Origin: Paraphysomonas bandaiensis
Lineage: Eukaryota > Protista > Chrysophyceae
DNA: 32,936 bases
Direction: 5' to 3'
Assembly (NCBI GenBank): GCA_965644295.1
Contig: CBFFRP010000452.1
Coordinates: 1-32,936 of the forward strand
Part shown: piece by piece, positions 6,223-28,278 of the stretch
Numbering within the stretch: position 1 is the first letter of the stretch
Layout: every line of letters begins with the position of its first letter
The notes under the pieces: model-generated
The model's database searches: none
What the model was told of the DNA's origin: nothing
What the model saw: the letters and a program-made list of their open reading frames with translations, nothing else
Made by a program: the position numbers and the translations under genes

Positions 6223-6679
6223 CATACATACATACATACATACATACATACATACATACATACATACATACATACATACATACATACATACATACATACA
6301 TACATACATACATACATACATACATACATACATACATACATACATACATACATACATACATACATACATACATACATACATACATACATACATACATACA
6401 TACATACATACATACATACATACATACATACATACATACATACATACATACATACATACATACATACATACATACATACATACATACATACATACATACA
6501 TACATACATACATACATACATACATACATACATACATACATACATACATACATACATACATACATACATACATACATACATACATACATACATACATACA
6601 TACATACATACATACATACATACATACATACATACATACATACATACATACATACATACATACATACATACATACATAC
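6223..6679 (+). repeat. Perfect (CATA)n tetranucleotide array, about 114 units
   Basis: Directly visible; lies between divergent starts at 5982 (-) and 6766 (+). Confidence 0.99.
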
Positions 6680-6765
6680 GTATAGTAAATAGTGTATATA
6701 TCTGCAGGTGTTGTTGTTGGTATTGTCACTCTCTGTTATTGTTATTCTCTGGTATCACCCGCATC

Positions 6766-8119
6766 ATGTCATCCTCAAACACTCCATTCTCTCCCCTTCC
6801 AAACACTTCTCCATTAGGATCTAATGAGAAATCATCTCTTCTCGACACCTCTAATCAACACCTCCGAGACCTGCGCTTAGCTATAGAATTCAAGTACCTT
6901 ATGAGTCATGCACCTGGAGGTACGTACAACTATACCTTCTTCATAGTTTTTTCATATTGATATTATACAGGAGTGTATTTAATGCCGTATTTAGATGATA
7001 TACGACACTTTGCAGGGGTTATATTTGTACGTAGAGGTCTATATAAGAGTGCAGTGTTTCGGTTTGATGTTAGACTCCCTCCAACTTATAACTCCATTGG
7101 AACAACTCCTCAAGTGGTGTTTACTCCGCCTATATTTAATCCACTTGTGGATAAGAAGGTTAGTGTGTTTGCATATCCACTTATATATACATATGCATGT
7201 CTATATACATGTGTATCTCTACTATATATCTGTATATGTATATGTATACGTATATATGTATTAAAGTATCTATTTTTGTGTGACATTAAAAATATTTTTT
7301 TGTAGACAGGAGAATTGAGGTTGTCGTGTGATGCGGCCCTGCATGAGTGGAACCCTAAGAAACAGTTCCTTATGCACGCATTAGTATTCCTAAAGAAGAT
7401 ATTTTATATGAAATCTTTCACTGAATTTGAATCTGTTCCCAATGAAGAGGCGAAACAGCTGTATGACATTTACACTCTATGTGACGAGTATGTGATGATT
7501 GTGTATAGGTTTGTTCGTGACAAGGATGAATACCTACGCCGAGTGACTGAGTGTGTAGAGGATTCACTGGTATGACCTATACATAACTCGTCCTGTTTGA
7601 TGACTGATTCTTGCCGTACTTACTTTCCAGAACCGAGTTTATGATATTCCCCCGAATTGTCCACTTGTCTTCACCGAGGTGAGCAACTCGAGCTTTTTTT
7701 TAGATATGTACTGATATCTAAGCGTAGCCCAAGCAAGTTCACGAAACTATTCGAGCTCGGATTTACAACAAGTCCGCCGCGTCTGAAGAAAAGGCTCGAG
7801 CAGTGGACGAGGCCCTTAACACTCCTCCCGAAAAGACTGCAGTGTCGCTCTTTCCTGGGTCAGCAGAAGTGGATTCCTCGCAGACGAAAGAACGCACGTC
7901 TAATCTTGACCAGGCGCAGGTGAATTTTATGAAGTTGCTCGCCGTATCACGCATAGATGTTAACCTTACCGTGAAATCATGTGTGATTTTCCGCTGTGTG
8001 TATAGTCACAATGTATTACATGAGATTTGATGCGTTATATACAGGCTCAAAATGACAGTTCTGAAGTGGCTAGTGCCCTTGCAGCGGAGGGAGGTGCAAA
8101 TAACAGTGACCAGGGTTGA
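6766..8119 (+). CDS. AKTIP: AKT-interacting protein / FTS / crossbronx-like inactive E2 (UEV), 7 exons
   Basis: Spliced product: LRDLRLAIEFKYLMSHAPGGVYLMPY…FAGVIFVRRGLYKSAVFRF…PQVVFTPPIFNPLVDKKTGELRL…LKKIFY. UBC fold with no catalytic Cys. Introns include 6920-6970, 7159-7305 and 7461-7508; stop TGA at 8117-8119. Confidence 0.85.
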
Positions 8120-8608
8120 GTTGACTTGAAGAGTACATATGGTTGCGTCTCGAACTGTTTCTTTGGATGTCACGCGTTTTTTAAACCTGCTTTGTTAATG
8201 TGTCCGGGTGTCATCAGCATATTTTGTATCGTATTGTAGACAATAGTTATAATAAGTTATATCATTAGAGATTAGAGATACACTGAATCTTTATTTTGTG
8301 TTAACACTAGTGGGGCACGTAGTGTATTGTTACTGCTCTACAACGGTATTATATAGATAATGCAAAATCTAGAGCATAGCGAAATTTCTTAGTTGCCAAT
8401 GACATATGACTTGACATGGGAAACTGTATCGTTGCGACTAAATAACATGTCAATCAAGTTCACGGTACTTTGACTCTTTGGCTTTTATTAACGGGATCAA
8501 TCTGCATCTAGTAGCTAGTAATATGATAACAAATTTCTAATTCTCTGCCCTACGATGGCAAATACAGTCCAACATAAAGTTTCACCCTATTAACCAGCTC
8601 CAAGCCCA

Positions 8609-25937: not shown

Positions 25938-27719
25938 GAACTCTGAAGGTTTATATATAGAGATCTGTGTAGTCTCTACATATGGGAGGATACTGCTGTG
26001 TATACTGTGAGCCAGATATATCTGCTGCTGCTGTATACATATACATATATGTATGCATACATACATACACATCCGTGAGGGTCACTTGATATAAAAATTT
26101 CAGATTGCTTGAGGCATTTTTTTTGTAGCTTAAGTTTCAATAAAAATGCAGTATTTTCTACTACAGTTTACAAAATTCGGGATTTTGATAGCTATTATTC
26201 ATATTTTCACACTTTTTTACACAATTTTAGAGAATATTTGTCATTTTTTTTCAGTTTCAGGTACTGCGGAAAGATATCACTCCTATGCAATCTATACACA
26301 CATGCGCTTTGTCTTTAACTGCTATATGCATGATACAACTAGTAGATATATATACCATTGAAGTTTTTTGTGCTCAAAAGTTCCAGAGATGCAATTCGAG
26401 TCACATAACCGGTTGCATAATTCTCATGCAAGACGTGAGATGCGATATGGCCATATTCTGATGGGTTAGTTCCAGTTCCAGCCTCATGTCTCTGATATAT
26501 GATTATTATGAGGTGTAAACTACATTCATCATGAATCATATCAATGTAACTACATGTGGATAATGTACAGCAATGAGACATTCATTGCAACAGCGTGATC
26601 TTATTGCCAATTTTAAAGTTACTGTACACTCAACAACTACACGTATGCATATGTTTCAGCTGTTTCACTTCATCTACATGAAGTAAATGTTGAGTTTATG
26701 TGCTACAGAAAATTAGCGCCAGAAGTCCGCCCTTCTCTTTTTTCCTGTTATCTTGTAAGCGCCACGGCAGGTTTTGAATGTAGTAACACTTAATTGACGT
26801 TTGTGTGAGCATGCTAAATCTCAGAACGTATAATAGCACTGTTTGCAACCGAATGATACGACTGTGCACTCTCAGTATGAAGCTTTAGTTGAGATATAAA
26901 ACTCTACTTTCCTAGTAGTTGAGTTATAGATGCAGCAAAGCGCGAGATATCTAAACTACGAGATTCATGTTCTGCTTCTGCTTGATTAATGAGTACTTAG
27001 TACATCAACGAGAAGCTCACACTACATTATACATATTCTTTGAATAATACAGAGTAATTGTCGTTCTAAAAGTACTATAATTTAGTAATTAAGTGTTGTG
27101 TTTACTGAATTTAGTTTTCTCATTTCAAAGGGAATCGATGTCTATTTCTTACAGCAACAGCAATTGCACTTTAAATCTTATTGTAATTTAATTCTTATCG
27201 TATATAGTACCATACTAAAACATTATACAATGTGAAATTATGATACAAGCATCTTCTTTTAATAAACAACATTTCTCGAACCACGAAAGATAGATCTAAT
27301 CTTGTACTTCAACATTTACTCCATTGTGGTCGACTGGTAGCTACAGTATTCATTACTATATGTCTAAGACACAAAAAATATTTAGAGAATTTGGGACTGA
27401 GTGGGGAATTCTAGACCTAAACGGGAATACTTCCCTCGTAGGTAAGTAGGTAGCATATTAAGAGCATATAATCATATTTCGAGATACTTTCGTAGGGAAT
27501 ACAAATACAGGTATAGTATTTCGCATTCACCAATGCTGAAACATGAAAAGATTGAAAAAGTGAACTGTTAGGACTTGCCCTATGTTAATCGCTTATGGAC
27601 GCCGGGAGATATTACTGCACTAAATCATGCACATAATCAAATACTAGCAACATATGCAAGAATTTGATAACGTCTACTTCAACTTTATAAACATTATTGG
27701 TTGCTTCACGTTTAACTAC

Positions 27720-28025
27720 CTATTTCATGAACTGAAATCCCCCAGAGAAATGAATTAGAAACGCCACGATGCCGGCAACAATGGCAAACGTGACGGCATT
27801 GTTCAATAAATCATTCTGTCTTGGGCCGAGCTCCTTCTCAATTTCAGCAACAGCCTCAGATATTGCTACATCATCTTCACAAGTGCGATCGTCCCCCTTG
27901 TCATTAATTGTGTTGTTGTCTCTTTCAATTCCTGCCAGTGTAAGGTCGACTACGATACATATGAGTATAATAACAAGAATAATAAATTAAGAAGATGTCT
28001 TACCCTCGCTGGAGTGAATTTTCAT
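27720..28025 (-). CDS. 83-aa acidic, probably tail-anchored membrane microprotein, 2 exons (28025-28004, 27949-27720)
   Basis: ATGAAAATTCACTCCAGCGAGG|gtaaga…tcgtag| gives MKIHSSEVDLTLAGIERD…EAVAEIEKELGPRQNDLLNNAVTFAIVAGIVAFLIHFSGGFQFMK*. Not in the supplied ORF track. Confidence 0.7.
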
Positions 28026-28126
28026 TGCACAATTTATTTAAGAGAGTGAGAGATTGGGAGTATAAGTATATATATAGCAGAGTGATAACAACATAAAACA
28101 ACAATGATCAAATTAGCTGACTCTGA

Positions 28127-28278
28127 CATACATACATACATACATACATACATACATACATACATACATACATACATACATACATACATACATACATACA
28201 TACATACATACATACATACATACATACATACATACATACATACATACATACATACATACATACATACATACATACATA
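28127..28278 (+). repeat. Perfect (CATA)n array, 38 units
   Basis: Directly visible; lies between divergent starts 28025 (-) and 28560 (+). Confidence 0.99.

Follow-up and report, generated by a model that had tools for sequence, protein, structure and literature searches.

At a probability of about 0.6, the long (CATA)n arrays of the window (the whole stretch of 32,936 nucleotides that was analysed) are hyper-expanded microsatellites in the untranscribed spacer between core promoters, where slippage would be favoured by negative supercoiling and open chromatin and the arrays would be tolerated, with a passive or modulatory effect. Tandem Repeats Finder detected four near-perfect arrays of 153–628 bp each and no further long arrays in the window. 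They are microsatellites in the usual sense of head-to-tail units of 1–6 bp, with a period of 4 and 38–157 units at 98–100% matches. The arrays and the fifth divergent gap were located as follows.

6214–6679, plus strand: array 1, 116.5 units, 99% matches (Tandem Repeats Finder)
14287–14914, minus strand (reads TATG on the plus strand): array 2, 157.5 units, 98% matches
20139–20502, plus strand: array 3, 91 units, 100% matches
28126–28278, plus strand: array 4, 38 units, 100% matches
about 1600–2560: fifth divergent gap, array-free, with only a (TATG)4 run at 1748–1763 (plus strand)

The earlier note on this DNA had placed four near-perfect arrays between divergent start codons, and this was borne out, with array edges lying about 86–282 bp from the nearest ATG on every side of all four arrays. 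It had also described four of the five divergent gaps as occupied and the other gaps as empty. We obtained the same occupancy, with arrays in none of the five convergent gaps and in none of the one or two tandem gaps (6–7 other gaps). The arrays took up 59%, 70%, 54% and 29% of their ATG-to-ATG gaps in the order of arrays 1–4, so three of them did fill more than half, and both orientations did occur, since array 2 has CATA on the minus strand and the others on the plus strand. Only the extent of array 2, given before as 14287–14856 or beyond, was changed. Its start was correct and its end lies further on, at 14914. A degenerate tail of array 2 continues up to ~14940, at the 5' side of the CATA strand, and the 5' side of array 1 degrades to ACACAT and CCACAT variants. 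The (TATG)4 run in the fifth gap is possibly an unexpanded seed.

The genes beside the arrays were the following.

5872–5982, minus strand: mitochondrial-carrier gene, first exon; start codon ends at 5982, 231 bp from the left edge of array 1
6766–7572, plus strand: 5' exons of a UBC/UEV-like gene; start codon at 6766, 86 bp from the right edge of array 1; UQ_con match
13603–14145, minus strand: putative first exon, a 180-aa ORF, 141 bp left of array 2
14971–17497, plus strand: transcript of a KH-domain gene, spliced at seven GT..AG introns; KH_1; RNA-supported
18147–20110, minus strand: gene left of array 3 with one intron (19677–19816); RNA-supported
20607–23091, plus strand: protein-kinase gene with several exons; start codon at 20607, 104 bp from the right edge of array 3; Pkinase matches
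27723–28025, minus strand: small spliced gene encoding a tail-anchored membrane protein; start codon ends at 28025, 100 bp from the left edge of array 4
28509–29608, plus strand: transcript of a PhyH-family dioxygenase; CDS 28560–29483; RNA-supported

In the case of the spliced genes, domain searches were done per exon, and the mitochondrial-carrier identity came from weak but consistent Mito_carr matches on two minus-strand exons. The ORF at 13603–14145 was the weakest gene model of the window, with a coding score of 10.1. The nearest homologues were 51–59% identical, and the exact PhyH protein was absent from the database records searched.

Transcript starts were then compared with the array edges. 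The RNA 5' ends were ends of assembled contigs, which do not fix a TSS to the base, and all of them lay outside the arrays. In the KH-domain gene, whose ATG is at 15046 (131 bp right of array 2), contigs started at 14971, 14986 and 14989, which was 57–75 bp right of the array. The contig starting at 14986 had adapter immediately before it. For the gene at 18147–20110, whose start codon ends at 19937 (201 bp from the left edge of array 3), contigs extended to 20110 and 20106, leaving at most 29 bp to that edge. Six independent contigs of the PhyH gene started 11–51 nt upstream of its ATG (28560, 281 bp right of array 4), and the 5' end was about 231 bp right of the array. Among the contigs examined at arrays 2, 3 and 4, none entered an array. 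Short words were found at or near the array edges. The TATATAT at 6695–6701, before the UBC/UEV-like gene, is probably TATA-like, and the TATTTATA word at 20501–20508, before the protein-kinase gene, is a candidate element that spans the edge of array 3. The word TATTATG occurred at 14952–14958 for the KH-domain gene and, on the minus strand, at 20122–20128 for the gene at 18147–20110. The arrays were thus promoter-associated tandem repeats, upstream of and close to the TSS. Read placement covered only 14915–20138, between arrays 2 and 3. The convergent gap at 17497–18147 was nearly RNA-free and still had no array, which meant that absence of transcription alone was insufficient for an array.

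A wider sample of the genome showed the same dependence on gene orientation. We analysed another 20 stretches, each of 10 kb, from this 62.6-Mb genome of a marine protist, which were picked by a search pattern demanding a clean 3' array end. They held 22 arrays, and together with the four of the window this gave 26. As control we used the necessary alternation of divergent and convergent gaps, together with the non-central gaps in these stretches. With genes called in the sample by a codon-usage caller written for this analysis, not by annotation, 23 arrays lay in divergent gaps, two in tandem gaps and one in a convergent gap. The sign test of divergent against convergent gaps gave p = 3e-6, placement relative to non-coding length gave p = 5e-10, and the result was unchanged across coding-score thresholds of 10.5–15. 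A gene 5' end was faced by 48 of the 52 array sides. Both tandem-gap arrays were nearer a gene's 5' end, and the lone convergent-gap array, of 108 bp, was flanked by transposon-like repeats. These results supported a strong genome-wide tie of arrays to head-to-head gaps, in a comparison by junction type such as the earlier note had proposed. Under a per-promoter model about 5.8 tandem-gap arrays were expected by hand calculation, against two seen (p about 0.05), and this shortfall agreed marginally with supercoiling. Convergent gaps had a median of 1195 bp and thus exceeded the net median of array-bearing divergent gaps (about 720 bp), yet they were empty. The genes adjoining arrays had functions unrelated to one another. 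Placement relative to the array strand had no clear asymmetry: by hand count, the median distance to coding sequence was about 263 bp from the 5' edge of the array and about 234 bp from its 3' edge. In the whole genome, exact (CATA)30 occurred at 72,978 register positions, and arrays of at least 120 bp had 637 right and 645 left ends. We estimated a total of ~1,000 arrays, which would make up nearly 1% of the DNA. Other tetranucleotide runs of at least 16 bp were not found in 233 kb.

The arrays lie beside promoters and are not promoters. They are additional spacer DNA that separates two core promoters, because RNA starts lay outside them, the gaps were of normal size once the array was subtracted, and 7 of 30 divergent gaps overall (about 6 of 7 among those not selected for an array) were array-free. 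The net size of array-bearing gaps had a median of about 720 bp, against about 590 bp in array-free divergent gaps. In the window, the ATG-to-ATG gaps were 535–902 bp, or 274–382 bp minus the array, with RNA 5' ends for one gene per gap at most. The distances from array to transcript start varied, which is also not the behaviour of a core promoter element. The earlier description of a bidirectional promoter system was therefore correct in that the arrays adjoin core promoters (5' ends at no more than 29, 57–75 and about 231 bp), and it failed for the promoter system itself, since transcription started in unique DNA. The normal net gap sizes and the unselected gaps without arrays spoke against an array as a required part of the promoter.

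Array length was highly changeable. In an inverted duplication with arms that were 99.9% identical, the two arrays were 624 and 1480 bp, the latter being the greatest length among the sampled arrays. Array length turns over much faster than point mutations accumulate. The proposal that length is a tunable parameter was supported as regards quick change. The CATA unit is Py-Pu-Py-Pu throughout, a strict purine-pyrimidine alternation. With the arrays masked, alternating purine-pyrimidine runs made up 6.6–7.2% of divergent-gap DNA, compared with 2.6% of convergent-gap DNA (2.7-fold). The arrays were 75% AT and 25% GC, and the predicted folding of both strands was 0 kcal/mol. Expansion through a hairpin or slipped hairpin was rejected as unlikely on this minimum free energy, and a tract once unwound would remain open because neither strand folds. 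The 52 flanks were compared all against all by BLAST, and the only matches were a single duplicated pair and the transposon-like ends that three arrays touched. A common flank motif or a transposon-borne satellite was rejected, because unique flanks meant that no shared mobile element was involved. Two exact junction patterns had no match in metagenome contigs.

Based on these results, we propose that short alternating purine-pyrimidine seeds, abundant in promoter gaps, would grow by replication slippage or unequal exchange. The negative supercoils from two diverging polymerases, together with open chromatin, would keep the AT-rich, structure-free tract easily unwound. The supercoiling argument fits the order that was observed, with divergent gaps far above tandem gaps and tandem gaps at or above convergent gaps. 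Arrays would persist in these gaps because they are never transcribed there; in mRNA, one repeat strand would place an ATG every 4 nt. The array would then be a spacer of variable length that sets divergent promoters 0.15–1.5 kb apart, passive or modulatory in effect and not a required promoter element. It may absorb supercoils or exclude nucleosomes and may give transposons landing sites, and the arrays would account for the several transposon families of this genome that land in promoter gaps. The arrays might also tune or insulate the neighbouring genes. Selection or a motif-specific binding protein might just as well be the cause of the restriction to a single motif and of its very high purity along as much as 1.5 kb.

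The most serious alternative, which we considered possible but well short of probable, is that the arrays are selected cis-elements. They would act as a spacer that excludes nucleosomes, absorbs supercoils or insulates, or as a multivalent platform for a sequence-specific protein, and the repeat number would tune or uncouple the neighbours. The extreme positional specificity, the use of one motif only and the array edges that adjoin TATA-like words and RNA 5' ends are in line with this, quick length change would provide a tunable parameter, and there is a precedent in the motif family, (ATGT)n in the Plutella ABCC2 promoter (PMC13710865). However, most unselected divergent gaps were array-free, the neighbouring genes were functionally unrelated, and lengths spanned a tenfold range (153–1480 bp) with no favoured size. 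In addition, a relative at 51% protein identity had no array in a 21.6-kb locus with three divergent gaps. We held it rather unlikely that the arrays are a selected genome-wide architectural element of head-to-head promoters, namely a topological or chromatin spacer of variable length (a supercoil sink, a nucleosome-free insulator or a multivalent protein platform) and possibly a DNA-unwinding site, in which repeat number sets the coupling of divergent genes. If so, this protist would carry about a thousand rapidly mutable expression dials.

The arrays might instead be by-products of another process in promoter gaps, either meiotic or mitotic double-strand-break hotspots or replication origins and DNA-unwinding elements. 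This was judged improbable. Variant repeats were polar in a way that resembled polar minisatellite mutation, period violations dropping from 2.6% to 0.5% from the 5' end of the CATA strand onward, but this polarity was partly a sampling effect of the search pattern that demanded a clean 3' end. The arrays are 75% AT with both strands structure-free when unwound, genes were always directed away from them, and inter-origin distances resemble the density of about one array per 60 kb. Yet divergent gaps only 4–8 kb apart can all bear arrays, which is too dense for origins. Even less credence was given to the arrays as platforms on which symmetric adenine methylation (6mA at ApT) marks gene starts. 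Each repeat unit does offer one ApT, and an MT-A70 family gene is present in the genome. In 18 eukaryotes, however, AMT1-type 6mA is placed in the nucleosome linkers that follow the TSS, an apparent upstream signal being an artefact of head-to-head genes, and AMT1 is usually paired with an AMT6/7 partner (PMC12695648). Here the arrays were upstream of both TSSs and a single MT-A70 match was found in the genome, so the methylation platform of the earlier note was a poor fit. Assembly artefacts or contig joins, or the cargo of one transposon family, were the least credible. Short-read RNA and DNA contigs were unable to span arrays, three sampled arrays touched transposon-like repeat ends, and one pair was a duplication. 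But random misjoins would give random gene orientation, not 23 of 26 divergent; there were no N runs, lengths covered a range of 153–1480 bp, most arrays had unique flanks, and each flank had a correctly oriented promoter and gene.

The preferred reading, an expanded and tolerated spacer microsatellite, was compared with known systems. Our literature search found no published account of such arrays in a stramenopile. Promoter microsatellites were previously known as scattered single-gene modifiers; here nearly 1% of a compact genome consists of one tetranucleotide, which is restricted to intergenic DNA of a single topological class. With a mutational cause, this genome would record naturally how transcription-generated supercoiling affects repeat stability. 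If it is selection, divergent promoters would have a repeat-based spacing or insulation with inbuilt quick variability. Either way, about a thousand parallel loci are available for studying repeat length together with DNA topology and bidirectional transcription.

Promoter tandem repeats in yeast, and promoter STRs and eSTRs in human, confer transcriptional variability. Like the CATA arrays, they occupy the nucleosome-poor upstream region, are hypervariable in length and can alter spacing and chromatin. In contrast, the CATA arrays comprise one motif, 38 to about 370 units (0.15–1.5 kb) and ~1,000 loci, almost exclusively between divergent genes, with a putative role in expression. Human minisatellites adjoin recombination hotspots. 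They share with the CATA arrays rapid length change and variants polarised to one end, which is here partly a sampling effect, but their unit is 10–60 bp compared with 4 bp. In the Plutella xylostella ABCC2 promoter, a single insect locus, (ATGT)n expansion switches chromatin state and expression by length, and at least 27 units silence the gene through E(z) (PMC13710865). The repeat is of the same family (a rotation of the complement) and is also located in a promoter. Unlike at ABCC2, genes beside arrays of 38–157 units were clearly transcribed here, which meant that long arrays were not silencing. A further comparison is with the twin-supercoiled-domain model and with the alternating purine-pyrimidine, Z-DNA-prone and easily unwound tracts upstream of active promoters. 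The CATA arrays differ from Z-DNA tracts in that TA steps form poor Z-DNA and in that known tracts are short (CA)n or (CG)n, not kilobase tetranucleotide repeats. They share the strict alternation, are sited where the negative supercoils of two polymerases meet, and are absent from the convergent gaps where positive supercoils meet.

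The window carried four near-perfect (CATA)n arrays, and Tandem Repeats Finder detected no further long array beside them in its 32,936 bp. It was an intron-bearing eukaryotic contig from a 62.56-Mb assembly of 669 contigs. Gene models were built from ORFs, codon-usage score, Pfam matches and RNA contigs, with spliced genes searched one exon at a time. The arrays and their neighbors were as follows.

6214-6679, CATA on the plus strand: array 1, 116.5 units at period 4, 99% matches; between a mitochondrial carrier gene (minus, ATG ending at 5982) and a UBC-like gene (plus, ATG at 6766).
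14287-14914, CATA on the minus strand (TATG on the plus strand): array 2, 157.5 units, 98% matches; between ORF 13603-14145 (minus, the weakest model) and a KH-domain gene (plus, ATG at 15046).
20139-20502, CATA on the plus strand: array 3, 91 units, 100% matches; between a gene without assigned function (minus, ATG ending at 19937) and a protein kinase gene (plus, ATG at 20607).
28126-28278, CATA on the plus strand: array 4, 38 units, 100% matches; between a small membrane protein gene (minus, ATG ending at 28025) and a PhyH dioxygenase gene (plus, ATG at 28560).

The strand order of the genes was almost perfectly alternating (- + - + (+) - + - + - - + - -), and at all four arrays the left neighbor was on the minus strand and the right neighbor on the plus strand. 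In the fifth divergent gap (about 1600-2560), all that was found was (TATG)4 at 1748-1763. The window's other gaps, five convergent and one or two tandem, were without any array. The distance from array edge to ATG was 86-281 bp, and arrays 1 to 4 took up 59%, 70%, 54% and 29% of the ATG-to-ATG gap. The earlier note had described arrays between divergent start codons in four of five divergent gaps and in no others, about 80-280 bp from each ATG, with three filling over half of their gap, and this description was accurate. A different repeat, of 42 bp (9195-9338, 3.4 copies, 99% matches), was located within a 456-aa ORF (8609-9979) that gave no Pfam match.

Placement was then counted on an independent sample of 10 kb around each of the first 20 distinct arrays listed, on contigs C1-C23. 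Genes there were called with our own codon-usage ORF caller trained on the fetched DNA, not from official annotation; when run on the window, it recovered the RNA- and Pfam-supported gene models. The set was small: 22 sampled arrays and four from the window made 26 distinct ones, each 100 bp or longer. Divergent and convergent gaps are equally numerous because the two types must alternate along a chromosome. The enrichment by junction type considered in the earlier note was borne out, with 23 of 26 arrays in divergent gaps and one in a convergent gap (p = 3e-6 under equal numbers; p = 5e-10 against non-coding length). Two of the 23 were copies of one duplication, which did not affect the conclusion, and the counts were unchanged across coding-score thresholds of 10.5-15. 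The two tandem arrays each lay 200-290 bp from one gene's 5' end and 850-1950 bp from the other gene's 3' end. The convergent array was 108 bp long and about 2 kb from both genes, with transposon-like repeat ends on its flanks. Convergent gaps were the longer ones (median 1195 bp vs about 720 bp for divergent gaps minus the array), and those of the sample contained no CATA-family run above 15 bp. No other tetranucleotide run of at least 16 bp was found in the 233 kb of window and sample.

Of the gaps in these 233 kb, 30 were divergent and 28 convergent, but no more than about 18 were long same-strand gaps. If genes were oriented at random, same-strand gaps should equal divergent and convergent gaps combined in number. 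The genome seems to be organized largely as head-to-head pairs, in a sample that is biased because it was centered on arrays. Seven of the 30 divergent gaps had no array, as did about six of the seven that were not selected for one; the window, with four of five, was unusually dense. The coding-to-coding median of divergent gaps was about 720 bp net of the array and about 590 bp in array-free gaps. The arrays were additions to the gap, not replacements.

Genome-wide, exact (CATA)30 occupied 37,422 register positions on the forward strand and 35,556 on the reverse, so that orientation was symmetric. In-register 3' ends of arrays of at least 120 bp gave 637 pattern matches, and the corresponding 5' pattern gave 645. 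Allowing for other registers and interruptions, we estimated, rather than counted, a total of about 1,000 arrays, near 1% of the DNA.

Four RNA-type runs, as assembled contigs rather than raw reads, were mapped to 14915-20138 between arrays 2 and 3. Every intron joint had GT..AG ends in gene sense (CT..AC on the plus strand for the minus-strand gene), and therefore the mapped contigs were transcripts. RNA of the KH-domain gene started at 14971, 14986 (with the sequencing adapter directly before) and 14989, which was 57-75 bp past the final unit of array 2. In the case of the minus-strand gene left of array 3, contigs extended to 20110 and 20106, at most 29 bp from the array. No contig among the four runs crossed either end of this interval. 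For a PhyH protein of 99% identity, six RNA contigs started 11-51 nt upstream of the ATG; this puts the 5' end close to 28509, at a distance of about 231 bp from array 4. Since the RNA 5' ends were outside the arrays and no contig crossed, the arrays appear to occupy, untranscribed, the interval that separates two core promoters. The proposal that arrays lie at or next to both core promoters held as to adjacency for the three genes with RNA 5' ends; the array itself was not a start site. TATA-like words at 14952-14958, 20122-20128, 20501-20508 and 6695-6701, located either at the array edge or in the unique sequence that separates the array from the RNA 5' end, are putative promoter elements. 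The PhyH transcripts (28509-29608) came from six marine metatranscriptome samples. They matched the window at just 97.8% identity, which means that the sea harbors a related strain. The transcripts stopped about 100 bp short of the convergent CBF/Mak21 stop codon (29707), and the 3' UTRs therefore probably overlap. Contigs of three runs also matched 33-35 bp at 17658-17690 and 18062-18096 in a convergent gap, beyond which the contigs continued into unrelated sequence in both directions; the matches could be short repeats common to transcripts elsewhere, or tiny exons.

Array length appeared to be labile. An inverted duplication on contig C2 (about 64630-73768; L012:3088-10000 and L013:1-5074 of the sample) had arms of 1817 bp plus 189 bp that were 99.5-99.9% identical, enclosing about 3 kb with two genes. 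Such a structure could come from a recent segmental inversion-duplication or from a fault in the assembly. The array inside one arm was 624 bp vs 1480 bp in the other, so that, if the assembly is right there, length changes far faster than bases mutate. A third array began 7 bp past the right arm. Variant units, often CCTA, gathered toward the 5' end of the CATA strand, a polarity only partly trustworthy because pattern-based selection favors clean 3' ends. In L009, L022, L026, L027 and L028, (CCTA)n stood directly 5' of pure (CATA)n on that strand, with a usually abrupt 3' end. This layout suggested polar turnover. Neither single strand of the repeat was predicted to fold (minimum free energy 0 kcal/mol for both), which made hairpin-driven expansion unlikely; the tract, once unwound, would remain open. 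Alternating purine-pyrimidine runs of 10 bp or more, counted after masking the arrays, covered 6.6-7.2% of the DNA in divergent gaps. Their share was 4.4-5.4% in same-strand gaps, 2.6% in convergent gaps and 1.4% in coding DNA, so that seeds occur in promoter gaps generally. One mobile element as carrier was ruled out, with unique flanks at most arrays. Three arrays (L021:9109-9376, L022:4784-4933, L027:4351-4500), among them the sole convergent-gap array, abutted transposon-like repeat ends that recur between loci, one a GC-rich unit of 68-105 bp and the other an end of 20 bp running into an A tract.

Array frequency was far higher in divergent than in tandem gaps, and tandem gaps were at or above convergent ones. 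In the twin-supercoiled-domain model, a divergent gap takes in negative supercoils from its two flanks, a convergent gap takes in positive ones, likewise from both flanks, and in a tandem gap the contributions cancel. The observed order is that predicted for a tract destabilized by negative supercoiling. A per-promoter model would give about 5.8 tandem-gap arrays vs the two seen (p about 0.05, hand calculation). The convergent gap 17497-18147 was nearly RNA-free yet arrayless, so absent transcription alone cannot explain the pattern. Our main reading, with a probability of about 0.6, is that negative supercoils and open chromatin between divergent promoters favor slippage of (CATA)n, and that the expanded array would be tolerated because it is untranscribed, acting on its neighbors at most as a modulatory spacer.

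That the arrays are a selected architectural element of promoters is a tentative possibility, to which the exclusive use of a single tetranucleotide and the purity of the arrays point. It is unlikely that they are a by-product of a hotspot or origin. The earlier note's idea of 6mA platforms fitted poorly and is very improbable: AMT1-type 6mA sits downstream of TSSs, its apparent upstream signal coming from head-to-head neighbors (PMC12695648), and only one MT-A70 match (PF05063; C68:13755-14093, a 466-aa open frame, E = 2.9e-19) was found in the genome. That gene may belong to the AMT1, METTL3/14 or METTL4 subfamily. An artefact or transposon cargo is hardly credible, since random joins would not leave the genes pointing outward at 23 of 26 arrays.

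The nearest homologues on record were just 51-59% identical. No tetranucleotide array was present in the 21.6-kb locus of one such relative, with three divergent gaps, and on the thin evidence of this one locus the expansion appears specific to the lineage. A literature search found no published description of this array system. Promoter microsatellites are already known; what is new here is that one motif, at an estimated 1,000 loci or so, is restricted to the gaps between head-to-head genes. A precedent that favors a selected role is an insect promoter at which (ATGT)n length switches chromatin and long arrays silence the gene (PMC13710865). Here, by contrast, the genes adjoining long arrays were expressed.
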